NCBI GenBank assembly: GCA_047495785.1
Contig: JBLDXI010000001.1
Span: 1,116,001-1,180,000, forward strand
Length of the DNA: 64,000 nucleotides
From: Lepidodermella squamata
Taxonomy: Eukaryota; Animalia; Gastrotricha
Reading direction: 5' to 3'
The first letter of the stretch is position 1. Each line of letters starts with the position of its first letter. The notes beneath the pieces are model-generated. The model was not told the origin of the DNA. It did not search any database and saw nothing but the letters and a program-made list of their open reading frames with translations. The translations under genes were made by a program, and so were the position numbers. This document shows positions 20,413 to 47,857 of this stretch, piece by piece.

Positions 20413-20422
20413 CGAAATTATA

Positions 20423-20825: not shown

Positions 20826-20920
20826 TAGCATTTCTGATGCATAAATGCAAGAAACGAGAACGTGTCATTCGCCTTCAGTCGAATGTAGTTCGGCGAGTTG
20901 TAGTTGTGGGCGATCGCTAA
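20826..20920 (-). pseudogene. Duplicated 3' tip of LC8-like gene A (part of the 20335..20920 copy of 26989..27348)
   Basis: Near-identical to 27254..27348, including the stop codon and 3' flank. Confidence 0.85.
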
Positions 20921-21049
20921 GAAAATTGATCGAAATCGATCCAATCCATTTGCTTAATCTCTCGGCGGTTGTTATTCGCGACTTCTTTCGTCTTATCGTT
21001 ATCGAAAAATTCAACGTAAAAGACGTGGCTGAGTGGCTGAGTAATGAGC

Positions 21050-21305: not shown

Positions 21306-22561
21306 GAAAATGGCCTCCAAAAACCTGCCGGAGGAAAATAATTAAAACATATTAACAGATATTGCCGTAGAGCGCAGAGACTCGGAATCGCTATTGAAAC
21401 AGGTTAGGTATTGAGACCCCCAGACGATTCGTGGCAAAGACCCCAAGGCCGTCCCAAACTGCGCTACTCAGACTGCATGAAAAGGCAGTTGAAGAAAATT
21501 AATATTGAGAATTGGGAAGACGCCGCTGTATTAGCTCAGAATAGAATTTAGTGGCGTACGAAATTGAAAAATATCACAGATGATTAATTTTTGAATTATG
21601 AATTCATTTCGCTCATTTTTCGAACAAAAATATCGAATCTTTCAACATTTTTCAAGATACTTTGATTTAGGTTTGACTTAGGATCGACTACCGTTGGTCC
21701 TCCTCCGACACTCAGTATGGTTGGAGGAACACCATATTGCACTGGCCAAGAATGCACTGGTTACTCTTTTTTAGAGTTTATTCTATCATTAATTAGCGGA
21801 ATAAACAGATTTTGTTCTTAATGATTTTCTAGCAGACATGACTCATCATTAGCTGGTTTTTTCGATTTGTTTCTGCAAAAAAATAAATGAATTGCCGTCA
21901 CTGAAGAGGTGAAAACAATTACCTGACCATCTCCCTGTACGACCAGCAACCGATGGCAACGGCAAGGCTAAGGGAAATTGCAGCCCAAACAATAGTGAAG
22001 TATGCAAACGGCCTCAACTGTTCAGAACAATTGCGCTCTTCAATCGAAAAAAACAGCCGATAAGCCGTAGTAGCAAGCAAAATTAAAGACAGTTTGTGTG
22101 ATGTTTCAAGCAATAAGGGATGAAGTTCTTGATGGCATTTTGCTTTGATAGCGTAAACAATGACTAATTCAATTACGGTAGCGGCTATTAGAGCCAAAGT
22201 TAAAAGCAAGGTTATGTAAAAAGCAGGGAAAAGAGTAAAGCCGATTAGCAACGTTTGAATAGCGCCGGCGAACAATTCAAAACAGAAATGTAATGTTGTT
22301 ATCTGGCTAATGCAAGGAGGCCATTCTTTTGAACAAGGATCTTTTGCCAATATTTTGAATAATCATTTGAACACAGGGGAAAAGTGTTTGAAGAACGTTC
22401 AGAGATATGCACCAAGCAAAAGTCCGAATAACAAATCGTGTCTTGAAATGAACCGCGTCATGCCAAATTGAGGCCACTTTCCACAGAATTGGGGCGGAAA
22501 GAAAACATATTACAGCAATTTTCTGAATCCGATTCAGTTTGATTTTCTGTTTGTTTGTTCC

Positions 22562-23803
22562 ATCGCCAGGCTGAGAGCAACAATGTTCAGTCTGCCGGGT
22601 ATACAGGAACAATTGCAGATCTGGTATAATTTATAGGAAACTTACGTCACTATTATTAGTGACTGATTGATAGCCTTCGGGGATATCCACAGCACACATG
22701 TCAACGACAGCTTCAACCTGATAGGCAGCATGAAACCATTGCGGATCCCTCGTTTAGGATGAAACTTACGTTGGGTCTGGCTAATTCATCGCGGGGCGTA
22801 AAAGCCGTAAAAGCACATTCGGATTCAGAAATTTGAACGCTGATAGTTTCAGTCTATTTATTTTCAGATGATGAGCATTATTTGTTTGAAAATACTTGAA
22901 CTTACTTGATCATCACCGGGCATAGAAAATGGTTCTATATTCTCTACGCTAGTCCGGTGACGTCCGGTGTCATCTTGCTCTTGGTCGTGCGAGCCCTCTT
23001 CTTCCGTGCAAGGCGTAGCTATCGGTTCCGTTGTCGATGGAACTTCAGTTCCCTGTTTTGCTCCTATTACTGAATTACTGATGCCCGGATTGTCCATCGG
23101 CAGCGAGTTTGAATTCAGTTTTAGTAGCAAAACATGCTCTGTATGAGTTATATCGCCAGGCTGATAGCAACAATGTTTAGTCTACCGGGTATACAGGAAT
23201 AATTGCAGATCTGGTTTAATTATAATGGGAAACTTACGTCACTATTGTTGGGAACTGGTTGATACCTCTCGGTAGCGTCGTGGCTCAAGAGTTGATTCAC
23301 GCTTCCAAGCTCCAAAACAAAACTTTCAGCAGCTTCAACCTGATAGATTTTTATCAAACCTCAAGCCATTTCAGAAGCCTCGTTTTGGATGAAACTTACG
23401 TTAGCTCCGACTAATTCGTCGCCGTGTGAAATAGCCACGAAACCTAATTCGGATTCATACATTTGAACGCTGATAGTTTCAGTCTATTCGTTTTCAGATT
23501 ATGGACAATCTTTGTTTGAAAAACAGAGACTTACTTGATCGCGACCGAGCATAGAAAATGGTATTGCCACGTTATCGGTTTCATCTTGCTCTTGGTCGTG
23601 CGAGCCCTCTTCTTCCGTGCAAGGCGTAGCTATCGGTTCCGTTGTCGATGGAGCTTCAGTTCTCTGTTTTGCTTCAGGTAACCCGACCGTCGTCGCTCGA
23701 CTGTCCTTGCGGCTTTGGGCCGAGCGAGTCAAATAGCGCCCAGAATTACTGATGCCCGGATTCTCAAGCGGCGGCGAGTTTGAACTCAGTTTTAGCAGCA
23801 AAC
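22562..23803. repeat. Tandem duplication of a ~0.6 kb multi-exon unit (22562..23131 and 23153..23803)
   Basis: Both units start TCGCCAGGCTGA.AGCAACAATGTT and encode LLKL.SNS...STTEPIATPCTEEEGSHDQEQD. Confidence 0.9.
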
Positions 23804-26994: not shown

Positions 26995-27066
26995 GGCTCA
27001 GTAGCTTAGTGGTAGAGCGTCTGTCTCGTAAACAGAAGATCGCGGGTTCAATTCCCGCCTGGGCCT
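26995..27066 (+). tRNA. tRNA-Thr(CGT)
   Basis: Identical to the 20341..20412 cloverleaf. Confidence 0.93.
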
Positions 27067-27253
27067 CGAAATTATATTGCTCTTTGAACTCGCCAAGCCA
27101 CAGAAGACTCGGGAAGTTTGTGTGGCAAGTTGTCCCACGTCTGTATTTTTCTCAGTTTATTATCACTAATGATTTATAAAAGCGAAAAGCACCGTCTGTG
27201 GGTAATGGGTTAGATTTTCCGACATGATTTTCCTGTTTTTGTTGCTTCCGATT

Positions 27254-29419
27254 TTAGCATTTCTGATGCATAAATGCAAGAACCGAGAACGTGTCATTCG
27301 CCTTCAGTCGAATGTAGTTCGGCGAGTTGTAGTTGTGGGCGATCGCTAGGATGTCACCAGCCGCCACAGTCCAGTAGCCGCCATACTTGTTCTCATACTC
27401 ACCTCGCATGTACTGGCAGATACCGCCGGCATCCTGACCACGCCCGATAGCACCCGTCGCCCAGTTTAGCGTGTCCTGGGTTTTCCCACCTCCAAATCCG
27501 CTGTCACTATCAGACATAAGGGTGAACATGCCATAAGAAACGACTCGCGCATTCGTTGTCACTGCCTTGATCGACTTGACCTATAAAAATATCAAAAATT
27601 AAAATAGGTCATAACAAGAAAGTAATAAAATGCCTGTGTGCATAATTGCTGGTAAATTTGAAGGAACGTGTTCGAGGTCGCCCCAGCCGCCATTAGAACA
27701 ACCATGTTATTATCCTGCAAGGGATAGCGAGCCGACCACGATTTGCCGGCGCCGCAAAACCACCGCCCGCCATACCGTTGTTCCATCTGGCTTCTGATGT
27801 AATTACACCTGTCATACGTTGAATTCAACATTTGAATCGACCGCTGGGCGTGTTGGAGGCACAGATTTTTCACTTCATCCCTCGCTTTCGTGGCTGAATG
27901 AATCGTGAAAGAAATGCTGGTACGAGTCGCGGGAGAAGGAGCAGGAGCAGGAGCAGGAGCTGGAGCCGGAGCAGTCGGCATCGGCTGGTATTGGGGTGGG
28001 TTTGGATTATTCACTGGAGGAACGTATGCCTTGGAGTCAAACTGAGTTGTCGCAACCGTGGTCGCACTAGTGGTTACACGAGGCATATCAGGGATACGCC
28101 GGATAACATTGCAGTCCGGCAGGACAATTACAGCGTTATCGTTCCCTTTTCGCAAGAATATCAGGTTATTGCTGGCGGGGGCGAAAGACCCGGACAAATC
28201 GCTGTCACCGACTGCTACAATCCAATTACCACTGTACTTCTCCTCCATTTGATCCTTGATGTACTTGGCCATTCCTTTTCGTGTTGACTCGAATTGAGAA
28301 GCGAGTAGGAAAAAAGCGACAGCGTCTTGTTTTACTGACAGTTCCATCCCAGGGTCAGTTTTATCAGCCAAAATTTGCACATCACCCTAAAAAATATTTT
28401 CTATTTTTTCTGACATTTTCCCCGATTTTTCATACCGTTTGCAGCTCATTCACTGGAATGGGCGGTGGAGGTTTGAATTCGCTGCAAGCTGGGCGGAAAA
28501 TCTGAATCAGCGCCGGGTTGGTCGATCGGCGTTTCATAGCGATAAAATCAGCATCGGCATATTTGACCGATGTCGTGTGATTGCCACTGGTCGGTGAAAT
28601 AACCACAGCCCAGCTGTAAGGTCCGTACTTGGTGTTAAACTGCGTTCGGATGTAGTCGGAAATCGCTCGATCCGCGTTAGGTTTTTGCCCGTTGAAGGCA
28701 TAAGCTAACGTTGCGATATTCACTGCATCTTGGCGAACAGCTGGCGACATGCTAGGATCACTGTTGGTCAAGATTTCGAAATCACCCTGAAAAATGGTAA
28801 AATAAAATTTAAAAATTATAATAAAATTAATTAGTTGAAAAAGCGATTAAAGAAAGCGTTTAAGATTTTAAGATTTCTTATAAATACTCGAATTTCTGCA
28901 TTGCTTCTAGGTGGTGCTTCAGGTGACTGCGGTGCCGAGTCACCGCCGATATTGTCCCAATTTCCAGACGCTGTTGTAGTAGTCGATGTGGTCTCAGTTG
29001 TTGAATCGGTGATCGGACTCCCGGTCGAGTCAGATCCCGTGGTGGAAGTAGTGTCATCATTCGACGTATCGACTTTAGCCTGTAAATTGCGAATAACCAA
29101 AATTTAGATTTACCATTATTAAAGGCTTGTTTGTGTTAGTTGAGCTTGAAGCAGCCTCGTCTTCAGCCGCAGCCTGCGTGATTTTAGCCACACGATGACT
29201 AGCGGGTACTTCGAAGTCTGAGAAGCCGGAATCATGCTTAGCAGATGGTGTAGGTTCAGTTATAAAGCTTTTAGGCGTTATTGTAACTGTAGCAGGTATT
29301 TTAAGCGTTGTAGGCGGGCTTTGGCCTTCATCACTCGATCGCTTGCATGCACTTACTGATCGGACCGATTCCGAAACCAACAGGAATAGCAGTGTTACCG
29401 AAGTAACTCTAAACAACAT
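27254..29419 (-). CDS. Secreted protein A with four tandem dynein-light-chain (LC8)-like domains; 5 exons
   Basis: Signal peptide, S/T-rich region, then 4 repeats such as MELSVKQDAV...MAKYIKDQMEEKYSGNWIVAVG, resembling LC8 MQQDSV...[22 protein letters not shown]. Confidence 0.8.
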
Positions 29420-29493
29420 TATTCAATGATTAGCCCTAGAAAACAATATTATGACTTAATTCGAGAATTTTCATGTGCCAAAAAGGTAGCCGA

Positions 29494-29565
29494 AGGCCCA
29501 GGCGGGAATTGAACCCGCGATCTTCTGTTTACGAGACAGACGCTCTACCACTAAGCTACTGAGCC
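29494..29565 (-). tRNA. tRNA-Thr(CGT)
   Basis: Reverse complement of the same 72-mer; T5 terminator ~10 nt downstream. Confidence 0.93.
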
Positions 29566-30279
29566 TGAGATGACGATTCGATTTGTTAAAAATTCAGGTT
29601 TTACGATGATTGAGCCTTGAGCGCAAGTTTTTTCCAGAAATTTCATTATTAAAAAGATACATAGGAGTTCGGTAAGGAGAGAGGACTCAATGCGGCAACC
29701 GAAGTCACTGCTTGTAAATTTGTCTAAAATTGTTTGCACAAGTCTGTACGGGCACACCTTGAGTTTGATGTCAAACGAAAGCTGAAGAGACAGAGAATTT
29801 CACGCGATTAATCACATGTTTTTAGCGTTCAAAGTTGAAAAGTTAATTACCTGCGAATCTAGAGCCGAGTATAAAAAAACTATTCAAAATGTCCCCGCAT
29901 TGCGGTAGAGCAATCTAGTAACTCTAGTATAGTAACCAAAAGATTTTGGGTACTCAAACGCAATAGGGATTAAAGCAAACAAACACATCTGGTAAGGTTT
30001 ATATAATATCATTTCGTAATTCCAGAGCATCCTATGACATAGATGGTGCGTGCTATCGCATTACCGCGAGGCCAGTTATATGTATCACATCGGAATGTTT
30101 AATTTGCAATTCATTAGTTACCGCAGCAGAATGAACCCTAGTTTACATAGCACATTTCTGTCATTGGCTTCATTCTGTAATAAATTTATTCGTATCAATT
30201 TCCAACAAGAGTCATAAAATCAAGATAATAAAAATTACTGGGTCATTGTATAACTCCTTTCAATTTTTTCGCAGCTGAT

Positions 30280-32063
30280 TTACTTGCAGGAAGTTGGGTG
30301 CATGAAGGCAACGACTGCAAACGTATCATTCTTTAGAATCTGGATAAAATTCGGCACTGCGTATTCCGTCACCGTCACTCCTGTATCACCGGCTAAAACT
30401 GACCAAGCGCCGCCGTACTTGTTAACCAGCTGTGTCTGGACGTAACTAGTCAAAGAGCCGATTTTATCATTTCGCCCGAGTGATCCCGTCGCATAATCGA
30501 TCACGTCCTGCTTCTTGTACGATTCAACCCCGTAATTGTCATTAGGAACAGGCTTGAAGATGCCGTAATTCACCGCGCCAAGTCGCCCTGTTACACGCTT
30601 GATGTTGGCCGAACAAAACATGTTGTAAATCTGAATATCAGTCGATCGGCCAGGTGTCGGTCCGTTAACTTGCAGGGCGATGCTTGTATCCTGGTAGGGG
30701 AAAGACGCGGCCCAGGGTAATCCATTCGACCCGCTCCACACGCAGGTCCACTTGCCGCCGTAGACTTGTGTAAATTGCAACTTGATATAACTGCACCTGG
30801 TAGCGGCTGTCTTGCCGCCTAGCGTTATCGATTGTTCAGCTTGCTTCTTCGCGAAATCTCGCATCGAAAGTTGACTGAATTTCGAAGAGATTTTAACTGA
30901 AATGTCGTAGCTTTCACCCCGCGTTGTCGTAGTAATAGATCTAGTCGAAGTCGTTGTTGCTTTTGTTGTTGTTGCTGTTGTTGGTGTTGTTGGTGGTGAA
31001 GTCAGAAAAGCCGAACATTTCGCATTTTCAGGCATCAACTGGGCCATATGAACATCTCCTCGTCTAAGGTACAACAAATTTCCGCCCCTGGTTGAGTAGG
31101 AGCCGCTGAAAGGCCCGTTGCTGACAAGTGTCACCCAAGAACCTCCGAATCTCGTCGTCGTGCTGATATTCATAAATCTCGCAAGACCAGCCTTACTTTG
31201 GTCAGGATTCAGGGCATTGTTAGTCGCTAGAATGAAATAATTGACAATCTCCTGCCGAACAGTTGGATTTATGTTGCCATCAGATTTAGCCTTAACCAAC
31301 TCGATATCTCCCTGCAATTTAATTTAAATTTTTTAAGGAGGATTTTTCTTTTAAATTTCTTACCAAATTGAGATTTGCTGTAGTCGGAGCTGGCGCAGTG
31401 GCTGAGGTGCAGCTACCTCGAAATACCAGAACATAGGTAAGGGGTTCTTTCCTCCTTACAACGACGAATTCCGAAGGGTCAGATCGGTTGAAAAGCGCTG
31501 TAATTGTTTCATTCCCGCAGCCTACGGCAACATTCCACCACAAGCCGTACTTGACTGTCATGAAAGCTCTCGCCTGATCAGCAACAGCCTGGCACCAGTT
31601 ATCTTTTGAGCCAAGCATTGCGAAAGCAGTTTTCACGAACATGACAACTTCTTCCTTGAATTTAACCGGCGCTTCAGCACTGCTTTCCTCGGTATATCCG
31701 TAATCAGGCTACAATATGGTTAAAATAAATAAAATTATCGAATTTTTCAGGAATACAATGGCTTACCCAGGATTGTTCAGGGGTTGTAACATTTTTCGAT
31801 TCCTGTTAATTGATAAGATTATTTTTTTTATTTACCGATAAAATTCCTTACAGTCGAATTGCTGGCAATGGTATTGTTGACGTCTGGCGCTCCAATGAAT
31901 ATATGCACACCACTATTAGGAGCCATCGTAGTAACGGCAGGCTGTCAAAAATAATCAAGGTATGATCCAAGAAAATGGAGATACTTACCGAATTTTGCGC
32001 AGAACATATCCCGCTGATCAACGTTATCGCGAGTGCGATAAAACCTATTTTCCAGGCAGCCAT
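30280..32063 (-). CDS. Secreted protein B with four LC8-like domains; multi-exon
   Basis: Signal peptide MAAWKIGFIALAITLISGICSA; cores VKYGLWWNVAVG, TRFGGSWVTLVS, QVYGGKWTCVW, NKYGGAWSVLAG; ends NDTFAVVAFMHPTSCK. Confidence 0.8.
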
Positions 32064-33382
32064 TTCTGAGCTTTTTGTTTCAATTTTTAATCACAAAATT
32101 TTCAAACTGAGGTAGGCAGCTCTGTACGGAACAAGGCTACACGCCTCTGCACGGCAATAAAAAATGGCGAATTCCACAGATACTTTAAATTTAAAGGACA
32201 GCTATAATTTGATGATAAAAGCTTAAGATATTTGAGCCAGCTACATTTCTTTCAAGTTGGCAGTAAACACCTTATTAAGTCGTTTAAGTCTAAAGCGTTA
32301 TTCGAAGGATTTGTACTGCATGCTTTTTATATTCACGAGTAGGCTAATTTTTCATAGTTTTTCAACGTGAAATTCTTGTTCAGAGATTATCATAAAAAAT
32401 AGTAGGTCACCAATGAATGCGCTTTTTTATGTTTTAATCTCTGCCCTATAGTCAAAATGGTAACAAAATGGTAAGGTAGCAGCCCCCTCCTCGTGATAAG
32501 GTCTACGATCTACTTCAGGTATAATTCATCTTCGACTAAGTGAAGTCGAACTAGTCAAAGCCATCTACCTGGTTCATAATGGTAAATGTTAGCAACTTAA
32601 TAGGTAAATCCTATACCAAAAAGTCGTAGACTTCTAGTCATATACCAGAAGAATACCTGTAGTCGTTTCTACTGCCATTCATTTCTGACTTTATTAAGGC
32701 AGGCATTATAAGGAATGAAAATCTTAACAAAAGACTTTGAATTCGTGTAAGACCACACGGGTATAATAAGAGGATTCAAGAGGATATAAGTACATGTTCG
32801 AGTAAATAACAGTATATAGGAAATATTGGGAATATAAGTGCCCATGCACACAAAGACTAAAGACGAGAGGGCATGCTACTTTTTCGGTCTTCTTGCCATC
32901 GCGATGAACATCTGATTGTCGCGAAGTGGGCGTCCTACACATGGCAGCCAAGGCTCGGAAAGCCATTGGAACAATTCAGAAAGCCAAACATAATCTGTGG
33001 TTAAAGAAACACGAAATTAATCGAACGTTAAACGGTAAAGCGTAATGCTTACCGATTTGTAAGAGAGTAAGCGATGGCCGACGGCCAAGGTTCGAGCCCT
33101 CCGCCCCTCAAAATTTGACAGCCCAAACCGATTCTTTTGCTTCGCCCAACCTGTAAATTTCAAATTGGGGAAGTAAGCATCAAGTCTCCGCTTACCTGAG
33201 CGAGCATCGTATATTCGAGGCCATTCAAATAGTCTCATGCGAGACACAAAACCAACGGAGCTTGAAATCGTTGAGCATTCACCGAGTTTCTAGCTGAAGT
33301 ACCGTTTACTCCAGTTTGAAGAGATTGCTATGTTGGAGGGCGTTGAAAATTGAAAATCGAGAAAAATAACCAATCGAAAGTT

Positions 33383-35186
33383 TTATTTGCAAGAAGTCGG
33401 ATGCATGAATGCTACAACAGAAAAAGTGTCATTCTTCGTCATGCTGATGAAGTTGGGCGTGACGTAAGCTGCCGGCCTAACCGCGCTCAAATCACCCGCA
33501 AATATCGCCCACATACCGCCGTACTTGTTCTGCATCAGCGTTTGGACAAAATTAGTCAACGTCCCAACTCGATCATTGCGAGCAAGTGACCTTGCCACAT
33601 AATCTACGAGGTCCTGCTTCTTGAAAGATTCTGCCGATGTATTTTCCCCCGTCTGCTTGAACTGGCCCCAGTTGACCGCAGAAGGAACGGCCGTGATTCG
33701 TTTTATCGAATCAGCATCCGAGCAAAACATGTTGTAGATCTGCAAGTCGGACGAATCCGAGTTGTTTTTCACATCCATCGCTAGATTGGTGTCAGAGTAG
33801 TTGTAAGACCCAGCCCAAGCTTCGCCGTTCACTCCGCCCCAGGCACACACCCATTTTCCATCGTAAGTCTTCTGAAATTGCGAGCGAATGTAATCGCAAC
33901 GAGACTCGAATGACCTGCTACCAGATTTCAAAGATTCTGCAGCAACCTTAACCGCGAAGTCTTTCATCGAAGCCTGGCCTAACTTCGAGGAACCTTTAGT
34001 GCTGAAAACATAATCGATTGAGCTGGATACAGTAGTTGGACTTGAATTAGCCGTTGTTGATAGTTCTAATTTCATGGTCGTCGAGTTGTTATTAGGACCC
34101 ATAGTAGTAGTGAAGCCTGATTTTGTAGTCACCGGCCGCTGGCTTGTCGTAGTCGGATCTTGCTTAGCAAGGACGCAATAGTTCCAATCTTCGGGCAGGA
34201 ATTGCGCGAGATGAACACTGCCTCGCTTCAGATAGATGAGGTTGTTACCTCTCGTCGATAACGCCCCACTAAATGGGCCCTTGCTTACAACGGTCGCCCA
34301 GGATCCGCCGATTTTCGTCGAGATGCTCCTATTCATCGCCTCAGCAATGTCAGCCAGGCTTGCTGATTCGTTGGTAGCCTCAATGAACGAATTCACGATC
34401 ACTTGCTGAACTGTCGGATTCATTTTGGCATCAGATTTCACCTTATCAAACACGACGTCCCCCTTAATAAAAAAAATTAGATGAAAATTCTAAAGTTTTA
34501 TGTTAAAATACCAATTTCAGCGGAGTAGCAGGCTGTGCTTGTGGTATTTTGTAAGTTGCACAGTTAGCTCTGAAGAATACGAGGTATTTCCGAGGTTCCT
34601 TTTGCCTAACAACGTAGTGATCCGTTTTCGATCGGTTGAAAACAACCGTTATCGCATCATCTTCACACCCGGCTACAACGTTCCAGAACATTCCATACTT
34701 GGCAATGATGAGTATCCTAGCCATTTCTGCGGTAACCTGACACCCATCGGCTCTTTTAGAACCCGCGACGAATCCAGACATTGCGGACGTCATAACGTCC
34801 AATTTGAAATTCTCAGTAGCATCAGGAGCGTGATAGATAAGTTCATAGTTATCTAGCTGTTATGAATAAAATTTAGCATGAATTTATTTAAAATTATTGA
34901 CTTCCTATACCGCATTCGATGGTGTCGCCAATTTTCCTCGATTTGTTGTTGTTGATGACGAGGGCTGCGTAGTTTTTACAGTCGGCTGTGCCGTTGTCAC
35001 TTGAGTTTTATTGCGCCCTTCGTCCTTTTTATTATCGTCGTCGCTCTTTGAAAGTCATAATAATGTTAGGCAATAATTATATGAGAATGAAGGTGACCTC
35101 TCACCAACTTTTTTATCGGCAATGCTGGATTGAAATATCAACAGGCTGATAATAGCAGTGAATCCAAATCTCAAACAGTAATTCAT
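33383..35186 (-). CDS. Secreted protein C with four LC8-like domains; multi-exon
   Basis: Signal peptide MNYCLRFGFTAIISLLIFQSSIA; cores AKYGMFWNVVAG, KIGGSWATVVS, KTYDGKWVCAW, NKYGGMWAIFAG; close paralogue of B. Confidence 0.8.
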
Positions 35187-35365
35187 CGTGAGGGCCCTTG
35201 AAAAAATTTAAATAAAAGCTTTTCGTTTGTTTGGCATGAAATATGTAGCTATTTTTTGTAACCCTCCGTGTTCAACTGGATTGAACTGTCAAAGAAATGA
35301 AGATACGCCCACTTAACCATGATGAAAAACAAGAGATGGCCCGGTAGTTACGCTTTTATTTCATG

Positions 35366-37536
35366 TTAAAGAATGCCATTTTGAGCGAGAATTTTCGCGT
35401 TATCAGAACACCTGTCTTCAACGAAAACCAACGGCAGAAATAACCCCATAGGAACGAGTGAAACCAGGGCTAAACTGCTGGCGAACGCTAAAAAGTCGAC
35501 TTTAAACGCGATATCGCGCCACAATCTGTTATTTTCAATTCGCTTCGTGTGAATCCTCAAGCGAGTTGCCTCCAATTTAGCTTCGTAGTACTCTTGCGAT
35601 AGAAATTCATCGGACCCAGAATCCTCGGATGATTCATCGAAAGACGGTGTTACTCGATCTTCATCATCTGTTGAATCGCTTGAGGGTATTGGCGATCGTA
35701 AAGGTTGGGAAACAGCCGATTGCGAACGCCCTCGATTGCTACGTGATTCCATCGACAAAATCTTCTGGCGCATAGATTCGGCTTGTTGCTCACTTTCGTG
35801 AAGAAAAACCTGAATAATTAAAATTGAAAAAATACGTGATTTGCGGAGTACAAATAATACCCTGTCCAGGTCATCCGAAGATCCGTGATCTTCAGTATGC
35901 AAGGCTGGGACGTATCTAAAGAATGTGACGAGAATTTCTGGAGGAGGTACCGACCAAACAGCCATCATTCGCTCGACAAATACCGACTCCATTATACCGA
36001 AAGAAGAAATCAATATTAGGCCCATGATATACTGGGCTAAAGCCGTTACTGCATCATTAGTTTTAGGCTGGAAATTATTGAAAAATAGCAATTTTTCGAA
36101 TTTTTTTATGAACTTATTCCTACCAATTCTGCGGTTGAAATTGTTTGAAATACCACCAAGCTGAGCATGTTGGTGATGCCGAAGCCAACTCTATCGCCAC
36201 TTGTTCCGAAGAGATTTATCGCGAAAACAAACAATGAAACTATCGACAAAATTATGCACTGAAATTTACGATTTTTAGTTAATTTATAACGGATTTAAAT
36301 TTAAATTTACTGGGAAAATTAAGTTGATGACGTAGAACGTTGTCTTTCGCTTCACTATCATCGAGTACTCGATTCTCGTGAATGTTTCTCCCAGCGTTTT
36401 GTACGTATGATTGTAAATCTGAAAAAAATTCTGAATTTTGAATAAATTAAATATATTTGCTCACGGTGGTTCGAAGTTGGCACAGAAAGAATTGATTTGA
36501 ACCGAAGCGGCTGTCAAGCTGAAATTTAACCAATTTTATTAAACCTATAAGATAAGCAGACTATTTACTACTTACCCCCATTGAGCTCTTACGGCTGAAA
36601 ATTAGCTGCTGATTGTTCAAGCTCCAGCTTAAAATCAAATGGAAAGGGTCAAAATCTCAAGTTTTCCTTGAAATTCCGCAACTCCAACCTTTCGAACTCG
36701 AAGGTGCACTAAAAAATTAATGATTTATTTATTGCAATATAAATTCGTTGGCAGTTACTTACCACTTGAAAGTCGAACGGAAAGGTTATGAGGTGGAGTT
36801 CTGGTTTGAGTAATCAAAGACTAATTTTCATAATAATTCATGAAAAATTCAGCAAAAATTTACCGCACCACGTACGAGCCGAGCCCGTGGGAACGTATTT
36901 CACCCATCCGCGATAGGAAACGCGAGCTAAGAAGCCGGAATCTCGAGTGATGGCATAATGATGATCAGCTGAGTTGGTCATCTGAATGACAACAATTTAG
37001 TGGCAATTAATGGCGAAATTATATCACTTTCATACCGCTATATCAGGAAGCCATATTTGGCTCGGATCGAAGGTTAAATGAGTCAAGCCGCCGTAGTCAC
37101 GTGGAGCCCTGCAGAAAGGATTGCCAGAGTGCTCTGTGAGAAGAGAAGACCTTACCATTGAATTCTACGATCCCTCCATTCGATGAACAAGGCTATAACT
37201 GATTCGAAGATGCCCTCCCTTTCATTCTTAATCAGAAAGTTTGAATTGTTTTTCAATTGAATTTGCAAATCGGAAAAGCTTACTGCAGCTTTGATTTTCA
37301 ATAGCAAAATATGCAATTTTATGACAACAGGCCTGAAATTTGGAGATAATAGCGAGGAATTAAGTGGGAAATGAAACCAACTTCGCTGGAACAGCCTGTT
37401 TTCTGTAGTCAGCAAGGATATCGCCGAATGGCTTCGGACCTTGTGCAGTTAGGCTAACCGTTACATTTGTAACAGTGTGATTGCCCTCATGGCACCAAGC
37501 CAAATTAACGCCAGCTAAAAATATTAGCAAGATCAT
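35366..37536 (-). CDS. Cys-loop ligand-gated ion channel subunit 1 (nAChR/5-HT3-like, non-alpha); many tiny introns
   Basis: Spliced: EWRDRRIQW, IWLPDIA, Cys-loop CELHLITFPFDFQVC, ESWS, KRKTTFYVINLIFPC, M2 GDRVGFGITNMLSLVVF, LPKT, M4 WRDIAFKVD. Confidence 0.9.
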
Positions 37537-37658
37537 TATTATCAAATTTTTATAATAAGAATTTATATTAATACGCCATTGACGAATTTTTGTCCAGAAA
37601 AGCTGAGTAAACTTTGAGAAAGCCATGTTTATTGACAGCACCACATAAACAATAGGCA

Positions 37659-39896
37659 TTAAAACCTTGCCTCATTGCCACCCTTCGTCAACATGCTCTC
37701 AGCGTTATCCGAGCATTCATCATAGACTAGAACAAGAGGAAGAAACAACGCTAGGGGTACTAGGATAGAGGCAGATAGGCTAGTCACAAAACACAACATG
37801 TCAATTTTATAGGCGACTTGATGCCACAGCCGGTTGTTGTGCGCGCTTTCGGCCTGTTTGCGCATTCGCAGGACTTTCAACGATTCAAGGAGAACCTTAC
37901 GGGCTGTGTCGTCAGTATCACTGTCTAGCACGATGTTGACAGAAGGCGAGAAAACTTCGCTTGAACCGACTGAGGGTGTTAGAGATGCGCCAGTATTCAC
38001 GTTTGTTAGGCCTACGCCAGATTTTGACAGGATTAAATTCCGCTTTCGAAACGCTTCCATGCGGCTTGCGAGGGAGCTTTTCGAATAATTAGCGTCACTT
38101 TTTCGAATCTCAGCTTCAGCTCTTCGAACGACTTTAATCTCATTCATCAGTTTTTCCTGTTGAGATAAAATTAAAAAAATTGAAGCACAACACAAAGTCT
38201 AACCCTATCCTCGATATTTTGCAGCTTCTCAAGATGAAACGGTGGAATTTCTCGGAATATACGAAGAATAAACTTAGGCGGCGGGGATTTGCTGTTATCC
38301 ATGAGCCGCTCGACAAAAATTGTTTCGACAATACTGAAAGCTGAAAGTAGCACAAGAGATACGATGTATTTTGACAGCGAAGTGACTGCGTCGCTTGTTT
38401 TCGGCATTTCGGCTGTTGCGATGGTTTGAAACACGACCAAGGTTAGCATGCTGGTCGTGCTGAAGATTATTCGATCGGCTGTTGACTCGATGGGCGAGAT
38501 TGCGAATGCGAGTAGGGAAATAACAGACAAAATGGCGCACTGAAAAATTGAGAAAAAGTCTTCGAATTGTTAACAAACTCTTTTCCGAACTTACAGGGAA
38601 AATTAGGTTAACCACGTAATACATCGCTTTTCTCTTGACAATGACAATAAATTCGATCCGGGCGAAAGCTTCTCCAGTATGGACGTAGGTGTGATTATAT
38701 ATCTTTTAATAGGAATATTTCAAGAAAGTTGGAAAAATCAAACAGGATTCACCTTGGTTTTCAGTTCACACAGAAAAAACTGACGCGATCCGAAATTAGA
38801 ATCGAGCTTTGACATGAAATAGTTCTTGATTTAGGAGTAGATATTTTCGCGCTACCTACCGATATTTGACTCCTGTCATCAAAACTGAGCGCGTCACTTT
38901 CGAGAGACCAGCTCTCAAAATCATAAGTGCACTAAAACAAAAATTTGGACCATGAAACTTGAAATGTTGAAATATCGGAACTAACCGTTTGGAAATCGAA
39001 CGGAAATGTCAGCAAATTGAATTCTTAAAATGAAATTTTCGCATTAAAATTCAATAATCATGGAAGCAGCGACTTACCACACCAAGTCCGGGCAGTTCCT
39101 ATTATAAAATTGGATTACTGGCTTTGAAGAGCATCAGTTATTAATTCATACCTGTTGGGACAAAGTTGATCCATCCTTCATGAGAGACTCGAGCCAGGAA
39201 GCGGCTATCCCTCGAAATTGAATAGTAGTGATCCGCAGAGTTGGTCATCTAAGTACATTTTTAAGTCCTCGCTATGTGGTTATATTGAATAAATTACCGC
39301 AATATCTGGCAACCAAACCTGATGTGAGAAAATTTTATAAAATGTAATAACTGAAACGAAAGCCCTTACTTGATCGGAATCGAAAGCTAAATAAGTCATG
39401 TTATTGTTGTCAATTGGGTTCCTTGAAAATATTATTTGAAGTGACGCGCATTTTTTACTCGCATGATCATTACCAGGTCATCCTTTTATCGCGCCATTCG
39501 ACAAAAAGCGCGATTACCGACTCGAAAATGCCATCCTTTTCTGACTATAGAAATCGACACATATTGAAATAAAAGCGTGAATGAAAAATTTTACTAACCG
39601 CGGATTTTAGCTTCATTAGCAGTACATGGAACAGTACTTTGACCGGCCTAATGAATGGAATTTTTCTAAATTTATTGACGGATCTTTTGAAAAGCTTGCC
39701 TTTCAGGAATTGCCTCCTTGTTATAGCCACTGAAATGGCCGCCGTCGCTCCAGGGTTTGCCGGCTACCGGTACATCTTGCGATCCCGTCGATACGAATGC
39801 AGTAGGCGGTCCGCTGTCTGGTACCAATGTGCCGAAAGCATTGGGAATAAAGCAGACGAATGGCCAGCAAACGAATGACCAACGGATAATTTTCAT
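37659..39896 (-). CDS. Cys-loop ligand-gated ion channel subunit 2
   Basis: VWLPDIA, CEFNLLTFPFDFQTC, ESWS, KRKAMYYVVNLIFPC, ADRIIFSTTSMLTLVVF, MPKTSDAV, WHQVAYKID. Confidence 0.9.
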
Positions 39897-40254
39897 AATA
39901 TTAGTTGCGAATGTTCAATTTTCATGTGAGGCTATTTCTATCTTTAATAGTGAATTAAAAATTATTCAATTGGCTGAGCTATTACTGTTGGCCAGCTGAG
40001 CAAACTGAGAGCTTCACGTGGAGTAGTTTTGTTGTTTGAAAACAATAAAAGCTGATATTTACGCTCTAACATGAATGAATATTCGACTTCTACACATTTT
40101 TTCAATGATTCCCCTGGTTCAAAATTCTATATTATGAAAATGATCGGGTTTATTACTTTTATTCAGGCACAAAATCATTGAATACTAACGATAAAGGTGT
40201 TCTCAGTTCGTAAATTTGATATTGGAAATTTCAAGGATAGGAAGTTGAGATAGC

Positions 40255-42860
40255 TTAGGAAAACGACGTTCCATGCGGCGCAACATGGGCGAGCAAATAC
40301 CGAGCATCGTCCGAGCAGTCGTCTTGAACGAGAAGAAGCGGCAAAAACAAAGCCATCGGCACCAGTAGAGCAAGTGCCGTGCACGTCAAAAATGAAATTG
40401 TATCCACCTTATACGCAACAGTGCGCCACATTCGATTGTTTTTCACGCGTCTAGCGTGACGCCGAGATCGGAGAGTTTGAATAGCCTGAGCGTCGATAGC
40501 GTCCTGATTCGCATCAGCACTGTTATCAGCCGCCCATGATCCGCTGTTCATCACCGCGCCAAGAATGTCCCTTGATACATTCGACGACGAGCTAGACGAT
40601 GAGGATGACGATAACGACCCGATTGAAGACATTGGATGAGGCCCGCAGCAATCAGTTGGCTCGAGGCTGTTGATATCATCGCTGGGGGACTTGCTCGGCA
40701 GTTGGATATGCCGCGAGATTTCACCTGATGGAGAGGGCGTTACGGCACTCGCCACGCTGCCCGCCAGGCTATGGTTCAATGCCGCCAGTTGTTCACCGGA
40801 CACGTAATTGAACCGCGTTTGGCCAGTTGAACTTTGAGAATTACTGAGCCTTTGCCGTCGCTTTATTCGCCGATTCATATTTTTCCTAATCTGAAAAAAA
40901 TAAAAAATAAAAACTCCAGCTTAAAAAATTAATATTTTACTTTATCAAGCTCGTCGTCGGTATCGTCTTCATTCGGCTTCTTTTTATCGCTGTGGAATTC
41001 AGGCACGCCCTCGAGCATTCTCAGCAGAAGTTTCGGCGGCGGTTTCGAACATCTCTCCATGAAGCGTTCGACTACAACGGATTCAGTTATTCCAACGGCT
41101 GAGATTAAAATCAGAGCGATAATGTATTTTGATAGTGCCGTAACAGCATTGCTTGTTTTAGGCTGAAACATGAAATTTGATAATATTTTGAATTTTCGGA
41201 AAATTTTCCCACCATTTCAGCCGTCACAATAGTTTGAAATACAACCAAAGTAAGCATGTTTGTGGTCCCGAAGCCGATCCTATCCCCTGTAGTTTCGACC
41301 GATGGTATAACGAAAACCAGTAATGAGATAAGCGACAGCGTTGTGCACTGAAAAATCGAGAAGTCTTGATACATTTCGAGGAAAGCTAATATCGAGCAAT
41401 ACCGGGAAAATCAAGTTGACGATATAAAAAGTTGACTTTCGCTTGACGATGATCGAAAATTCAACTCGAGTAAATGTCTCTCCAGTGAAAGAGTAAGTGT
41501 GGTTGTACGTCTGCCGATGAAGCATGAAAAAAACTCGACATAGTTCGATGAATGAAAAAAATCGCGTCATACCGTTGTTTTAAGTTGGCAAAGCCAAAAT
41601 TGGCATGATCCGAAATTTGAGTCTATCTGCAGAAGGAGTTGGGAAAATTTCGGAGGTATTTGTTTCATGAATCTTTGTTTTACCATCAAGGCGCTTTCTC
41701 CATTGAATGTCATCGTTGAACTATCTAATGACCAGCTAATAAAGTCAAATTTTCCAATCTCGCCGATAAATGGAGAATATTTCTTACCTTTCAAATTCAA
41801 GCGTGCACTTGGTATCAGTTTCAAATTATAAGCTTTCATTATTTTTTTTGTAATGAAATAAATCATACCATTTGAAAATCGAAAGGAAAAGTCAGAAGAT
41901 TGAGGTCTATTGTAAATTGATATTTTTACGAATTTCCTCGAATTTTGCGAAGTAACTTACCACACCAGGTTCGAGCCGTGCCTAAAATTTAAGCCAACAG
42001 TTCACAATTTTCTAATTAAATCGTGTTACTTACCCGTTGGCACGTATTTTAGATGTCCTGTATGAGTAATTCGAACGATGAATCGCGAATCTCGAGATAT
42101 AGAATAATGATGATCAGCCGAGTTGGTCATCTAAGGTAGAAAATATATAATTAATCGAACAACACGCTCGAGCAGATTATACAGCAATATCCGGAACCCA
42201 CACCTGCAAAATTGGTAGATTAAAATTCTGAAAAATTACTGTCATAAGCTTTTACTTGATCTGAATCGAAAGCGAGTAGCGTCAAATTGTCGTAGTCCAT
42301 GGGATCCCTACGGCGAAAATGCAAGAAATTGCCAAATGGAGAGACTTTAGCTTACCAAACCATCCTTTTATCGCGCCATTCGATAAATAAGGCAACAACG
42401 GATTCGAAAATGCCTTCTTTCTCGATCTGTAAGAAAGAAAGTATCGATAGGCATCGATTTTCACAGTGAATCTTACCGTTGATTTGACTTTGATAAGCAA
42501 AACGTGAAGGCTAACAACCAGTGGCCTGCAAAATTGAGAATCATTTTTATAATTTCCAGAGTTTGAATGTAAGAATAACTTTTCAGGCATCGCTTCCTTG
42601 TTGTAGTTATTGAGTATTTTCGACAAAAGACGTTGGTCTGAGCTGACATCATCGCCATCAGCCAAGTTCATGTTGGAGTTGGAGTTGCCGTCATTGTTAC
42701 TACTACTTTGGAATCCACCACCCGAGCTACTACCACCCCCGCCACTTGTCGGCGCCGACTTCGGCGGCAATTTCGGCGGTCTATTCTTAACTGCTGCTTG
42801 ACAAAACGAACAGCATACAGTTAAGCATAAAACTATGAGGATTCCGAAAGTTTGAACCAT
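40255..42860 (-). CDS. Cys-loop ligand-gated ion channel subunit 3
   Basis: Signal peptide, DQRLLSKILNNY, VWVPDIA, CDLNLLTFPFDFQMC, KRKSTFYIVNLIFPC, GDRIGFGTTNMLTLVVF, WRTVAYKVD. Confidence 0.9.
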
Positions 42861-43735
42861 CTAAATGAAACAAAAAAAAACAAGAAATTTCTGGAGGAAT
42901 CAGGTTAATGTTACTTCTTGATATAGCTTTCTAGGGCATTTTTATATTGCGTAGCACAGATTACAATTTTTTCAACACATATATTGGCATTATCAAGGCG
43001 ATCGGCGGTGAAATAAATGCTGAATGGAAGTATATAATAGAGTGAGGGTGCGAAAGATCATTATTTAGGTTTATTTGTATAACATCTCACTGCAGCTCAG
43101 TCCGAAGAATAAACACACGCTCGCATCTTCAACGGCATAAATCAACGCAAGAATTGCCTGAAATTACAATGACTTGAAATGCAAGTAATTCGCGCATAAT
43201 AAAAGTTGAAGCAGCGAATTACACCGAATGCAATTATCGAAATCATCGATGCGGAACAGGAAGGCCTTTCTAGCAATTATTCATTTCCAATTACTAATTT
43301 AAAGGACATGCTCAATATTTCACCGAAAAATCAGGTTAAACCGAAATAGCATGAAATCTATAAATTTCTATCAATTTATTAAGAAGGCATTTATTAGAAT
43401 CACACGATTGATTAAAATGTTCTTTTTGCCAGTTGAGTTGCTTCTGAATTCATTTTTCAGCGAAAAAATCAGCTGTTGATATTTACCTCATACCTGCTAG
43501 ATAATCCTCACATCGTTGTTTGGATTATGCGGATTTTCCGCCTTCATCGCTCGCTGGAAAAATAACCATAGGCGCCGGTTTCGGAAGATAATAAACTTGT
43601 TCCCACTTTTTTCATGTTCTACCGAAAGTTCTTTATTGATAAAATCCTGAGAAAAACTCTTCGAGGACAAATAAAATAATGCATCTAATATTCACGAACG
43701 CTAGCATTTCCTGTGTAAACACGAGTGCTGCCCGT

Positions 43736-45244
43736 CTAATCTTGGCATTTCGGGTTCATGTAAGCCGCCAGTGAAAATCCGCCACTCTTCCTTTGAATAT
43801 GCAAAAAGTAGGGCGCCACGTAGCTAGCAGTCGCGTCCATCAGCGATTCGCCGACAATTACAGTCCACACGCCGCCGTAGGTCAATTGCAGCTGCGACCG
43901 CACGTAATTTCCAATAGTGCCGAAAGTGACGACTGGCAATTTAGACGCAACAAAAATGCCATACATGACCTCGCTAATAGTTGTATCGTTAATATCATCA
44001 TCAGTGCTGTTTAAAACCATGTAATCATTCTGCAAAAAGACGAAAAAAATAATTAAAAAACCTGAGGATAGATTAAAATTACCGTGACATTCGAAGCTTT
44101 AATTCGATCTTTTGAGATCGTAAGTTGGCCACCGTAAATCGTTTGAGCAAGTTGGGAAACTGTAAATGTAGAAAAATAATAATTGTTGATGCTCAACTGA
44201 CCAATTTTTTGCTTACTAAATGATGGAATGCAGGTTTCTTGGAAAATGTGGATGACCATGGTGCGATTCGGCACGACACTTGGGTCATTTACCAGTTTAT
44301 CCCTCGACGTGTGGTAATCGTCGACCTGGAGCAGCATCACCGTTCCATCTATCGCGTCAGTTTGGGCAATTGCGTCTTTCCCAGCAACTGCTACAGCCCA
44401 GGGAAATTTCGAATATTTCTTATCCAAATTCCTGATTTGAAAATTAATTAAAAAATTGCAATGAATGTAATATTTTTGCTTACGCTTTTATGTAGCCAAT
44501 ACGATCAGAGGTAGACCCTGACGCTGGCGCGAGAGTTGCCAATTTAACGGCATAGGCGACCATTTCCCATCGATTCGGCGAAATATCCCCCATTTTCACG
44601 GTTACAATTGTTGTAATTTCCTGTTGGGAGACTGATGACACCTCAGCGGCTACGAGTGATCGGATAGTAGCGACCGTTGGCGCATTTATTTGAGGAGCGG
44701 GTTTAGCTGTGGTTTGAGCCATAACAGTCGTAGTCACGCTTGGTTGAGCACTTGTTGCGGGTCTTGTCGCGGTTGTGACGTTAACCGCTTGGGCCATTGT
44801 TGTTCCCATTGCCATTGCTGTTGTCATAGCCATTGTTGCGGCGGCTTTAGTCGTAGCTTCCGCCACAATCGATCGATTATTGCCAGTGGCTGACCAGTTT
44901 CCAGTTGAGGCGGCCCAAGTTACATTAGTCATGCCAGGGGTGGTCCAGCTAACATTATTCGCCATCTGGGTCACGTTTGACCAGGTTCCCGCCGGCGCAA
45001 CCGTCGATGAATTCATCCACATTCTAGCCCAAGTTGCATTTGCGGTTGTGATTTCCGGTTTAATTGTGGTCACGCTTGACTGGTTAAAAGCCGTGATGGT
45101 TACATTTACTACCAATAACGGTGCAACAGTCGTGACTGTTAAATTAGTAGCAGCGGTGGCGTTCGCAACTTGAGTCACATTTTCCGCTGCTCGAGAGAAT
45201 CCAGCTGCGATGATAACCAGAGTAACAGTCAATAAGCTCTTCAT
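43736..45244 (-). CDS. Secreted protein D: mucin-like Thr-rich stalk plus two LC8-like domains; 3 exons
   Basis: Signal peptide; many NxT sites; RIGYIKA|NLDKKYSKFPWAVAVAG and IGNYVRSQLQLTYGGVWTVIVG; ends LAAYMNPKCQD. Confidence 0.8.
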
Positions 45245-45626
45245 TACGTTCAAGTCCCCTTGAAAAGTAAATAACTAAATTTAGACGTGAAGAAAAACAG
45301 TTTTAAGTTGTTGTTTCCTATTAGAGGTTTCTTTTTATTGCGCATTGATAAAAGGCATTATTTAGTGATGATATTTGTTTATCATTTTTATTACCGTTCT
45401 CAAAGCACCTACCTACTCATTTTAACGCAGTTTGGGTTCAAATTCCAACCACGCAAGCACGGTGTGTTTGGTACTCGAGTATATGGCACCACCGCGGCGT
45501 CTTTTTATTCTCATATATTACGTCAAATTTTTTATTTCAAAAAAATGAAAACATATTATAAAGATGATGATTCACTCGATCGAGAAATTTCTTCGTAAGG
45601 TGATGAACTCACGATGACCTCGTTTC

Positions 45627-46722
45627 TCACATTTTACACTTTGGCTGCATGTATGCGATGAGTGTGAAGCCGTCGGCGCCTGTTTTTTGCAGCTGGAGAA
45701 AGTAAGGTGCCACGTAATCGGCGACAGACTCAAATACATCACCTATGGCAATCGTCCAAATGCCGCTGTGTATCATCGACAGTCTCGACTGAACTGCGGC
45801 GGCGATAGCGCCTTTCTCCTTTCGATAATAAGGAAGGTTCAGTTGAAAGGATTTTATAGTCGCCATCACATCTTCAGCTACCGACTCGTTCAAATTTTTA
45901 TCAGTCCCTTCCATGATTCGATAACCATCCTAAAAAATTAGGATTTTATTTCGCGATTTGTTCTACGAAAAAAATTACCGTGACGTTATCCATAATTGAC
46001 TTGGGATAGCTTGGAATGTTAAATTTTGGTATTCCGGAGAAAACTTGAGACAAAAAAGATGGAAAATTAGATGGAAAAGAACGAAACTATCATACGAAAT
46101 GAAGGCAGGCAAAACTGTTGAAAAATGTGAACAAGCAGCGTTCGATTCGGGGAGATCGACGGATCTCTCTGGAGATCGGGCGGCGTTAAATAGTAATCGT
46201 CGACTTGCAGCAGCATTGAATTGCCCTCAGCAGCGTCAAATTTAGCCGCCATGTCCCTACCAGCCGCTGTTACAGCCCATTTGCTATAAGTGAATCTAAT
46301 GTCCATTTTTCTGTTAAATTTGATATTAATATTTTAACACGATTTGTTTCCGGAATTTACGCTTTAATATAAGCTATCCGTTCAGCAATACTGCCGAGTG
46401 GGGGCGTTAGAGATGCCACTTTGATCGCATAAGCTATTACATCGTGGCCTTTCGTGGTCGATTGTTCAGTTCGAAGGCTAACCAGTACCAGAATGATGTT
46501 TGGTTTGTAGTCGTAAAGCGCTCTTTGATTCACTGTTGTCGTTGTTTGTGGCCGATTTGTCGTAGTAATTGTAACTTGATTGGTGCCATTGTTATTAGCA
46601 GTTGAATTCACAGAAATTTGGGCACTAGCAGGACCAGGGTCCATCAATGTAATAGAAAATTCTGCAGAATTCGCCGTCTGTATTGTTACAACCAACAGCA
46701 AGGCAATGAAAATACCAACCAT
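45627..46722 (-). CDS. Secreted protein E with two LC8-like domains; multi-exon
   Basis: Signal peptide; RIAYIKA|KMDIRFTYSKWAVTAAG and IAAAVQSRLSMIHSGIWTIAIG; ends IAYMQPKCKM; paralogue of D. Confidence 0.78.
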
Positions 46723-46909: not shown

Positions 46910-47857
46910 CTAATCGGATTGAGCTTTGTAAAGCTCAAGTGGCATTGTTGAGCGCATTTTGTTGTTAAATTCCGCCAACAGATCGGCGTTTATGAAGTAG
47001 TTTCGCCAGTCGCCTACAATGCCTTTACGCATGAACGGCGTATCGCTTTTCCACAGCCCAACAGCCTGCATCCAACTGTGATTCGCTGCGTCGTTTTGCC
47101 GCATTGTTTCAAATTCAGTCGCGTGGTAAATTTCATCGACAATTCTATCGTCATGAATTGGCTTCCCAAGAAAATCAGCTATCGCTCGAATCATTGATCG
47201 CCGATTTGTTACTAGGTCTTCATAGCGCAGGAATAACATATTTGGCAACTGGCCAGATTTGTAAAGATTGTAATAGTCCGTTAAATGTTTACCGTATGGC
47301 AAATAGATTATATCGCCATCCATGAAAAGCCTGGCAAATTCTTCGAACGATCCTTTAAAGTCGCCATGTCCTGCGAATGAAACTGACCTCGTGTGGTGGA
47401 AATAGGAGACTGCTACGTCTTTCGCCTCGCGGTAGACGTATATTAATTTGCCTTTGCCAATATTTCGCGGTAGAAACGGAGCTGGTAAATGGGTCTTGAA
47501 CAGCCGTGGTGGGGGCCGTTTGCCTAGCTCACTTATAGCCGATGGGGGTTTCGGAATTATTATGGCAACCTCTAAAAATGGTGCTCGACTAGACAGGTCA
47601 ATTGTTTTAGCGCCTTCAAAGTCCAAAGTCGAAATCATGTACACCAACTGCTGCATCAGTGTTGTTCCACATTTAGGCAGTGTAGCTATGAAAATATCAC
47701 CATTCTCAACGTTGAAATTTCGGATCTCTTGCCAATAGAAGGGAAACCACGGCGGAAGGGAATAGCCGTTGAATTTTGCGCACTTGCCTCTAGGATCGTT
47801 GAAAAGTGGGCGAAAAAAGTTCTCCACTTCGGGTATTTCCACCGGAAGGCCAGACAT
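46910..47857 (-). CDS. Cytosolic sulfotransferase, intronless
   Basis: TLPKCGTT, KTHLP, YREAKDVAVSYF, FMRKGIVGDW. Confidence 0.95.
   Translation of the reverse strand: MSGLPVEIPEVENFFRPLFNDPRGKCAKFNGYSLPPWFPFYWQEIRNFNVENGDIFIATLPKCGTTLMQQLVYMISTLDFEGAKTIDLSSRAPFLEVAIIIPKPPSAISELGKRPPPRLFKTHLPAPFLPRNIGKGKLIYVYREAKDVAVSYFHHTRSVSFAGHGDFKGSFEEFARLFMDGDIIYLPYGKHLTDYYNLYKSGQLPNMLFLRYEDLVTNRRSMIRAIADFLGKPIHDDRIVDEIYHATEFETMRQNDAANHSWMQAVGLWKSDTPFMRKGIVGDWRNYFINADLLAEFNNKMRSTMPLELYKAQSD

Follow-up and report, generated by a model that had tools for sequence, protein, structure and literature searches.

Predicted secreted proteins with paired LC8-like domains in the gastrotrich Lepidodermella squamata

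The dynein light chain LC8 (DYNLL) is among the most conserved hub proteins of eukaryotes; it is treated as strictly intracellular and acts as a regulated, non-covalent homodimer. A gene array in the gastrotrich Lepidodermella squamata raises the question of whether this fold might also have been put to use outside the cell and, if so, in what form. The array occupies positions 27254-46722 on the minus strand of the window, which is the whole stretch of 64,000 nucleotides that we analyzed (contig JBLDXI010000001.1, positions 1,116,001 to 1,180,000 of the forward strand), and comprises five genes, which we term g1-g5. Using manual gene models, sequence profile searches and structure prediction we arrive at a reading that we consider probable, though by some way not assured, namely that these genes code for lineage-specific secreted glycoproteins in which the LC8 fold has been moved to the secretory pathway as covalently linked pairs.

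Five paralogs with LC8-like domains and predicted secretion signals

A sequence-only reading of this DNA had proposed five paralogous secreted proteins at this position. When spliced by hand, all five genes indeed yielded complete minus-strand open reading frames (ORFs): g1 (29419..27254) codes for a protein of 642 residues, g2 (32063..30280) for one of 525 residues and g3 (35186..33383) for one of 545 residues, each with four LC8-like domains (in the case of g1 delineated by hidden Markov model), while g4 (45244..43736; 448 residues) and g5 (46722..45627; 314 residues) have two such domains apiece, located by profile. The predicted g1 product begins with a signal peptide, which is followed by a 142-residue Ser/Thr-rich region, two domains designated D1-D2, a 64-residue Pro-rich linker and two further domains, D3-D4. 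In g4 the signal peptide precedes a 190-residue region and two LC8-like domains, and g5 combines a signal peptide with a short stalk and two LC8-like domains. The introns are mostly 47-63 nt long and of the GT-AG type, with one set of positions common to g1-g3 and another common to g4-g5. In g1 the intron that separates D3 from D4 (27581-27633) is apparently GC-AG, and the first intron of this gene (29080-29113) is a doubtful one of 34 nt, which leaves the 5' part of the g1 model uncertain. As to the extent of the family, the originally proposed range does contain all five intact genes, but the array is not continuous: three Cys-loop ion-channel genes (Neur_chan_memb matches) on the same strand, at 35366-42860 (-), split it between g3 and g4, and a relic copy of g1 lies outside it.

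The proteins contain sixteen LC8-like domains in all, whose four classes, D1 to D4, are each conserved across g1-g3 at 26-53% identity. All are encoded on the minus strand, D1 at 28475..28786 (g1), 31403..31708 (g2) and 34554..34856 (g3), D2 at 28105..28386, 31009..31311 and 34169..34462, D3 at 27634..27927, 30607..30918 and 33716..34021, and D4 at 27257..27580, 30283..30606 and 33386..33715 of the same three genes, respectively. The two-domain proteins combine a divergent domain A, at 44221..44668 in g4 and 46100..46521 in g5, where it is split by introns at 44432-44483 and 46311-46360, respectively, with a D4-type domain B at 43739..44029 (g4) and 45630..45929 (g5). These units are about 92-113 residues in length, so the figure of ~90 residues initially given for the repeat was too small.

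The assignment of these repeats to the LC8 type, which had been made from a residue pattern, was upheld by several searches. Three large exons match the Pfam family Dynein_light (PF01221; gathering cut-off 29.1 bits) with 56.5, 42.8 (the large exon of g2) and 53.9 bits (g3). When single domains were scanned instead (14 from the window and two from P0001, the metagenomic relative described below), 14 of the 16 matched Dynein_light at E<=0.1, the best of them at 4.5e-8 but most below the cut-off. A profile of the 16 domains retrieved dozens of LC8 chains from PDB (best E=1.6e-11), and single-domain phmmer searches of the same database gave marginal matches (E about 0.05-0.1). Profiles from which one domain class had been left out recovered the omitted class at E 2e-6 to 4e-19; thus g1 D1 was detected at 3.6e-19 with its own class left out, and D1 of g2 and g3, D2 of g1 and g2, D3 and D4 of g3 and domain B of g4 and g5 were recognized in the same manner. 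Even the divergent domain A of g4 and g5 was recovered at about 4e-5 by a profile built without it (HMMER independent E-value 3.8e-5 and 4.6e-5, respectively). The equivalent of Trp54 of LC8 is the only residue that is invariant between the domains and LC8 itself, and the 'KYGG-W-V-VG' core of the domains matches that of LC8. On this sequence evidence we regard the membership of the repeats in the LC8 superfamily as solid.

Structure prediction points the same way. An AlphaFold2 (AF2) model of g2 D3-D4 has a mean predicted local distance difference test (pLDDT) score of 81.2, and both of its halves display the order of elements typical of LC8 (β1-α1-α2-β2-β3-β4-β5, about 89 residues). Foldseek matched both halves to LC8 chains with a probability of 1.00 and template modeling (TM) scores of 0.72-0.82 by target, and the repeats thus model as the LC8 fold, as the sequence-only reading had anticipated. 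When the whole model was searched against PDB, further matches to EspG3, hot-dog thioesterases and urate oxidase appeared; with TM <0.2 they are meaningless. Separately, in the search of AFDB Swiss-Prot the tail of Toxoplasma myosin-B/C (O00936, residues 909-1170) aligned to both domains (TM by query 0.56), which suggests that this predicted tail might hold a tandem LC8-like pair.

All five proteins possess a hydrophobic N-terminal leader (best 10-residue Kyte-Doolittle window 2.4-3.3) that is followed by small residues, and none of them shows a later membrane segment (best 19-residue Kyte-Doolittle window <=1.53). Their C-termini fall 1-2 residues past the last domain and hence leave no space for a glycosylphosphatidylinositol anchor signal. 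Downstream of the leader, 45-190 residues are of low complexity, 26-33% of them Ser or Thr, and each protein carries between 3 and 17 N-x-S/T sites, with 13 of those in g4 falling within its low-complexity region. No Pfam domain was found in the low-complexity regions, the match of the g1 stalk to New_glue (19.4 bits) being below the cut-off. The leader hydropathy strongly suggests that g1-g5 are secreted, and both the signal peptides and the Ser/Thr-rich regions named in the sequence-only reading are accordingly seen in every member of the family. Its further proposal of an LC8 fold placed outside the cell, with added cysteines and N-x-S/T sites, is likewise favored by the leaders, the stalks and an invariant cysteine that ends each domain.

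Domain pairs as putative single-chain dimers

If these domains were indeed exported, how might a fold that normally dimerizes non-covalently be accommodated? The number of domains is even throughout, being 4, 4, 4, 2 and 2 in g1-g5 and 2 in P0001. The linkers within the pairs D1-D2, D3-D4 and A-B are 14-29 residues in length, and that between D3 and D4 is also conserved in sequence; the D2-D3 linkers between pairs are 32-64 residues long and rich in Ser, Thr and Pro. A comparable parity is seen in the cysteines. The terminal cysteine, located a few residues beyond the last strand, is invariant across all aligned domains, and the total number of cysteines is odd in 14 of the 16 single domains but even in each of the eight pairs (2, 6, 4, 4, 4, 4, 2 and 2). 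In their mature form, g4 and g5 are left with just two cysteines each, one ending each domain. Provided that all cysteines are in the oxidized state, which is to be expected of secreted proteins, most pairs would need an inter-domain disulfide.

Published work on LC8 offers a structural context for these features: its β3 is unstructured in the monomer and becomes ordered as a strand only against the β2' of the partner, and its Ser88 is close to the dimer interface (PMC12017986). The invariant terminal cysteine of the domains falls in the Ser88 region. In the AF2 model of the cognate g2 D3-D4 pair the two domains form one rigid body with short β3 strands in both (predicted TM-score, pTM, 0.79), whereas a non-cognate control of similar size, g2 D2-linker-D3, gave a pTM of 0.42, a linker pLDDT <50 and no β3 in either domain, a difference to be read in light of the longer disordered linker of the control, which itself lowers pTM. 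The modeled D3 fits dimeric, peptide-bound LC8 (root-mean-square deviation about 1.6 Å) better than the monomeric nuclear magnetic resonance structures 1pwk and 1rhw (about 3 Å). Moreover, when both domains are taken together, the model can be superposed on those of tandem dynein light chain (DLC) proteins in AFDB with TM 0.65-0.73 over about 208 columns, and although both sides of this comparison are predicted, it indicates that the predicted inter-domain geometry is shared. P0001, which is in effect a natural D3-D4-only protein, shows that a single pair can stand alone. The working unit appears to be the domain pair, i.e. a pseudo-dimer, and not a string of independent repeats.

We propose that each pair (D1:D2, D3:D4 or A:B) might fold onto itself and so reproduce the LC8 homodimer in one polypeptide, a proposal to which the above observations lend moderate support. 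Within such a pair β3 of one domain would complete the sheet of the partner domain, and the two would be stapled by one or more inter-domain disulfides, of which the likeliest joins the C-terminal cysteines. The dimer would thereby become permanent and no longer depend on concentration, which is what a protein outside the cell requires. By extension, the two non-identical grooves at the pair interface could capture extended segments of extracellular proteins, or some other ligand; such capture might follow the LC8 mode, with the extended segment lying alongside β3, albeit with a new specificity. The two-pair proteins g1-g3 could then serve as adaptors or cross-linkers outside the cell, bivalent and borne on flexible glycosylated tethers. 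A bolder version, which we advance only as a speculative and rather unlikely possibility, is that these proteins are the extracellular counterpart of the LC8 hub: the disulfide-locked pseudo-dimers would bind, in their two non-identical grooves, short extended motifs in disordered mucin-like regions of secreted proteins, possibly those of their own stalks, to give polybivalent assemblies outside the cell, the pair, as a portable module, would in this lineage also have been joined to other secreted proteins, and the Ground-like domain of nematodes might represent a distant branch.

Several considerations count against paired secreted pseudo-dimers and temper the confidence that we place in them. 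Both the D3 and D4 domains of g1 have even numbers of cysteines (4 and 2, respectively), and this pair could therefore do without an inter-domain disulfide. The positions corresponding to His55, Tyr75 and Tyr77 of the LC8 groove are replaced by varied residues in the domains, and binding of TQT-type peptides should therefore not be assumed. The alignments behind the AF2 models were shallow (7 rows), pTM, DSSP and TM-scores served to deduce the LC8-dimer geometry and the Cys-Cys distances, and the longer linker of the non-cognate control, mentioned above, needs to be added to these. At the level of the genes, the splice models were made by hand from genomic sequence, and the call of secretion derives from hydropathy windows on these genomic models.

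Relatives and competing explanations

To place the family among known proteins we searched 1.84 billion cluster representatives, which cover a public protein space of about 15 billion proteins, with HMMER and recovered 12 matches. Eleven of these are DLC proteins of the cytoplasm with one or several domains, none of which has a leader; their sources include Tritrichomonas, Haliotis, a mite, cestodes and Parascaris. The twelfth, P0001 (E=8.6e-34), is the only outside relative and is likewise predicted to be secreted: in this 283-residue protein, encoded by a single exon on four ENA metagenome contigs, a leader and a stalk rich in Thr precede a single pair of domains, which are 51% and 43% identical to D3 and D4 of g1. 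A leader is thus present in g1-g5 and P0001 and absent from all the cytoplasmic tandem-DLC matches. In a word-indexed protein search the large exon of g2 had no match, and the D3-D4 alignment found only P0001. Two scans of metagenome contigs from the Joint Genome Institute (JGI), using the D3-D4 and D4-class alignments, returned pattern matches but no confirmed relative. Literature searches on secreted or extracellular dynein light chains, and on Ground-like domains in connection with LC8 or AlphaFold, brought up nothing relevant, and secreted tandem LC8 pairs were not found as a Pfam family, a PDB entry or the subject of a paper. With Pfam reporting just Dynein_light and the cluster representatives a single relative, the view of the sequence-only reading that the architecture is undescribed holds: LC8-superfamily membership is a known theme, and we found no described family with the paired, secreted and glycan-tethered architecture, which we accordingly regard as new.

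The source of P0001 can be narrowed down with the help of a neighboring gene. The window contains a CYP3-like cytochrome P450 gene at 54870-56078 (+), whose product comes closest, among named proteins, to those of a nemertean, a rotifer and a mollusc (30-41% identity) and, overall, to a metagenome protein (48%). By itself this P450 would place the host roughly among spiralian-like invertebrates. The contigs bearing P0001 and the P450 relative are eukaryotic and come from the ENA samples ERZ23486764, ERZ27333047, ERZ27332993 and ERZ23486787; a literature search for the metagenome BioSample identifier gave no paper. Since ERZ27333047 carries both P0001 and the closest relative of the window P450, the latter inside a tandem P450 array, P0001 probably derives from a related animal that was present in these samples.

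Comparison with described systems helps to delimit what is distinctive here. LC8 is a cytoplasmic or nuclear protein of about 89 residues that forms a non-covalent homodimer, and it provides both the homologous domain and, apparently, on the models, the two-domain unit with swapped β3 strands; the g1-g5 proteins, in contrast, are predicted to be secreted, range from 314 to 642 residues and carry N-x-S/T sites, fused pairs of non-identical domains and an invariant terminal cysteine. Out of the set Trp54, His55, Tyr65, Tyr75 and Tyr77 of LC8, only Trp54 is invariant in their domains. The cytoplasmic tandem-DLC proteins, such as A0A0R3SHR3 of Hymenolepis diminuta (181 residues), KAK8896949 of Tritrichomonas musculus and AFDB entries from Toxocara and Brugia, similarly have at least two LC8 domains per chain in a predicted arrangement that superposes on our model, but those among our matches (P0002-P0011) are devoid of the signal peptide, the terminal cysteine and the glycan-rich stalk, and are only weakly similar in sequence (E 1e-12 to 1e-4). 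The flatworm TAL/CaBP proteins, with structures available for CsTAL3 (5x2d), FhCaBP2 (5fx0 and 5fwz) and FhCaBP4 (9voa), share the DLC-like fold alone: they lack a signal peptide and combine N-terminal EF-hands with just one DLC-like domain, whereas g1-g5 have a signal peptide and 2-4 paired domains. No Pfam match to the EF-hand was obtained in any exon of g1-g5, and they are consequently not TAL/CaBP proteins.

Could the domains nevertheless be independent, like beads on a string, and dimerize between molecules, with inter-chain disulfides building up an extracellular gel, cuticle, eggshell or adhesive matrix? LC8 is after all an obligate homodimer (PMC12017986), mucin-like stalks with heavy predicted glycosylation would suit matrix or mucus proteins, and the New_glue similarity of the g1 stalk, for all that it is sub-threshold, would be in keeping with an adhesive. 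An extra cysteine immediately after the signal peptide of g1 brings its total to the odd number of 9, which suggests some intermolecular bonding. Yet the even domain counts, the short conserved linkers within pairs and the even number of cysteines per pair, as well as the markedly higher pTM of the cognate pair relative to the non-cognate neighbors, speak for self-contained pairs, and the conservation of the D1-D4 classes across g1-g3 is better explained by fixed hetero-pairs than by promiscuous homodimers, so that we judge a matrix of this kind to be unlikely. Less probable still is that the family corresponds to the Ground-like (GRL) proteins of nematodes, that is, secreted, cysteine-bearing Hedgehog-related ligands or cuticle factors acting on Patched-related receptors, with the Ground-like domain itself being an old extracellular offshoot of LC8. 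GRL proteins consist of a signal peptide, a low-complexity region and the domain, in the same order as g1-g5, and they resemble the latter in being secreted and in placing a small cysteine-bearing domain after low-complexity sequence, along with weak matches in sequence and structure. Specifically, g3 D2, the sole domain to do so, matches Pfam Ground-like (PF04155) at E about 1e-3, a nematode Ground-like cluster in the Atlas aligns 78 residues to our model at 2.6 Å, and an Atlas feature search placed nematode hypothetical and Ground-like clusters nearby (scores <=0.81, which are leads only). The resemblance noted in the sequence-only reading thus survives as a weak match, but it does not go further: it concerns one domain of 16, at 19.7 bits against a Pfam cut-off of 35.4, while Dynein_light is matched by 14 of 16; the TM-scores with the Atlas cluster are just 0.32/0.38, Ground-like is absent from the match lists of AFDB Swiss-Prot and of the AFDB clusters, and the host is not evidently a nematode. 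GRL proteins, furthermore, have one domain each as opposed to the 2-4 of g1-g5.

We attach very little probability to the idea that the proteins are cystatin-like inhibitors, in which a helix and the 'W-x-V-x-[AV]-G' hairpin would mimic the Q-x-V-x-G loop that cystatins direct against papain-type proteases. The domain profile does match cystatin B (2oct_A and 1stf_I), its positions 26-92 aligning with an E of about 0.003; nevertheless, cystatins are missing from the Foldseek and VIA lists, in which all the strong matches are to LC8, no Pfam cystatin match was obtained in the domains, and the AF2 model shows the two-helix topology of LC8. There remains the suspicion that the genes are artefactual, be it as pseudogenes, mis-spliced genes of cytoplasmic DLC proteins or an assembly error, and to this we give hardly any credence. 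It is true that the g1 model assumes the 34-nt and GC-AG introns, that the genes were modeled from genomic sequence and that a truncated relic copy is found at 20748-20953. However, an artefact would be hard to reconcile with five intact multi-exon ORFs, with intron positions shared between paralogs, with domain classes that are conserved at the identities given above, and with an independent single-exon relative, P0001, that displays the same leader, stalk and pair on four metagenome contigs. We therefore retain the reading of secreted, covalently linked LC8 pairs.

Genomic surroundings and significance

The region around g1 bears the traces of duplication. The truncated g1 relic at 20748-20953 (-) comprises the last ~30 codons of D4 and the 3' untranslated region and is 98% identical to 27177-27351. 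It belongs to a ~600-bp duplication (20341-20953 versus 26995-27351, 98-100% identity, ~6.4 kb apart) that also copies a tRNA-Thr(CGT) gene. Rfam reports three identical genes for this tRNA, at 20341-20413 (+), 26995-27067 (+) and 29492-29566 (-), and nothing else in the window; two of the three flank g1 and are inverted relative to each other. At 22557-23802 there are further tandem duplicates that recur about every 600-670 bp, with 81-97% identity and small similar ORFs.

In its general makeup the window is animal DNA with short introns, and besides the Cys-loop channels and the P450 it has genes for sushi proteins, sulfotransferases and an ANF-receptor-type protein. Four cytosolic-type sulfotransferase genes (Sulfotransfer_1) are situated on the minus strand at 6689-7702, 46910-47857, 56507-57286 and 61405-62121, one of them directly upstream of g5. 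Two large ORFs at 17144-19318 (-) code for secreted proteins rich in sushi (CCP) repeats, in which a profile scan detected no LC8-like domain.

If our reading of the g1-g5 proteins is correct, they would show by what route a dimeric hub of the cytoplasm may come to work outside the cell, gene fusion having taken the place of concentration-dependent dimerization. They would also reveal what nature makes of an LC8 scaffold that is confined to one chain and whose two grooves differ, and add a new type of extracellular domain to the repertoire of an under-sampled invertebrate lineage. Finally, they would turn into a concrete and testable question whether the Ground-like domain of nematodes might itself be an extracellular derivative of LC8.

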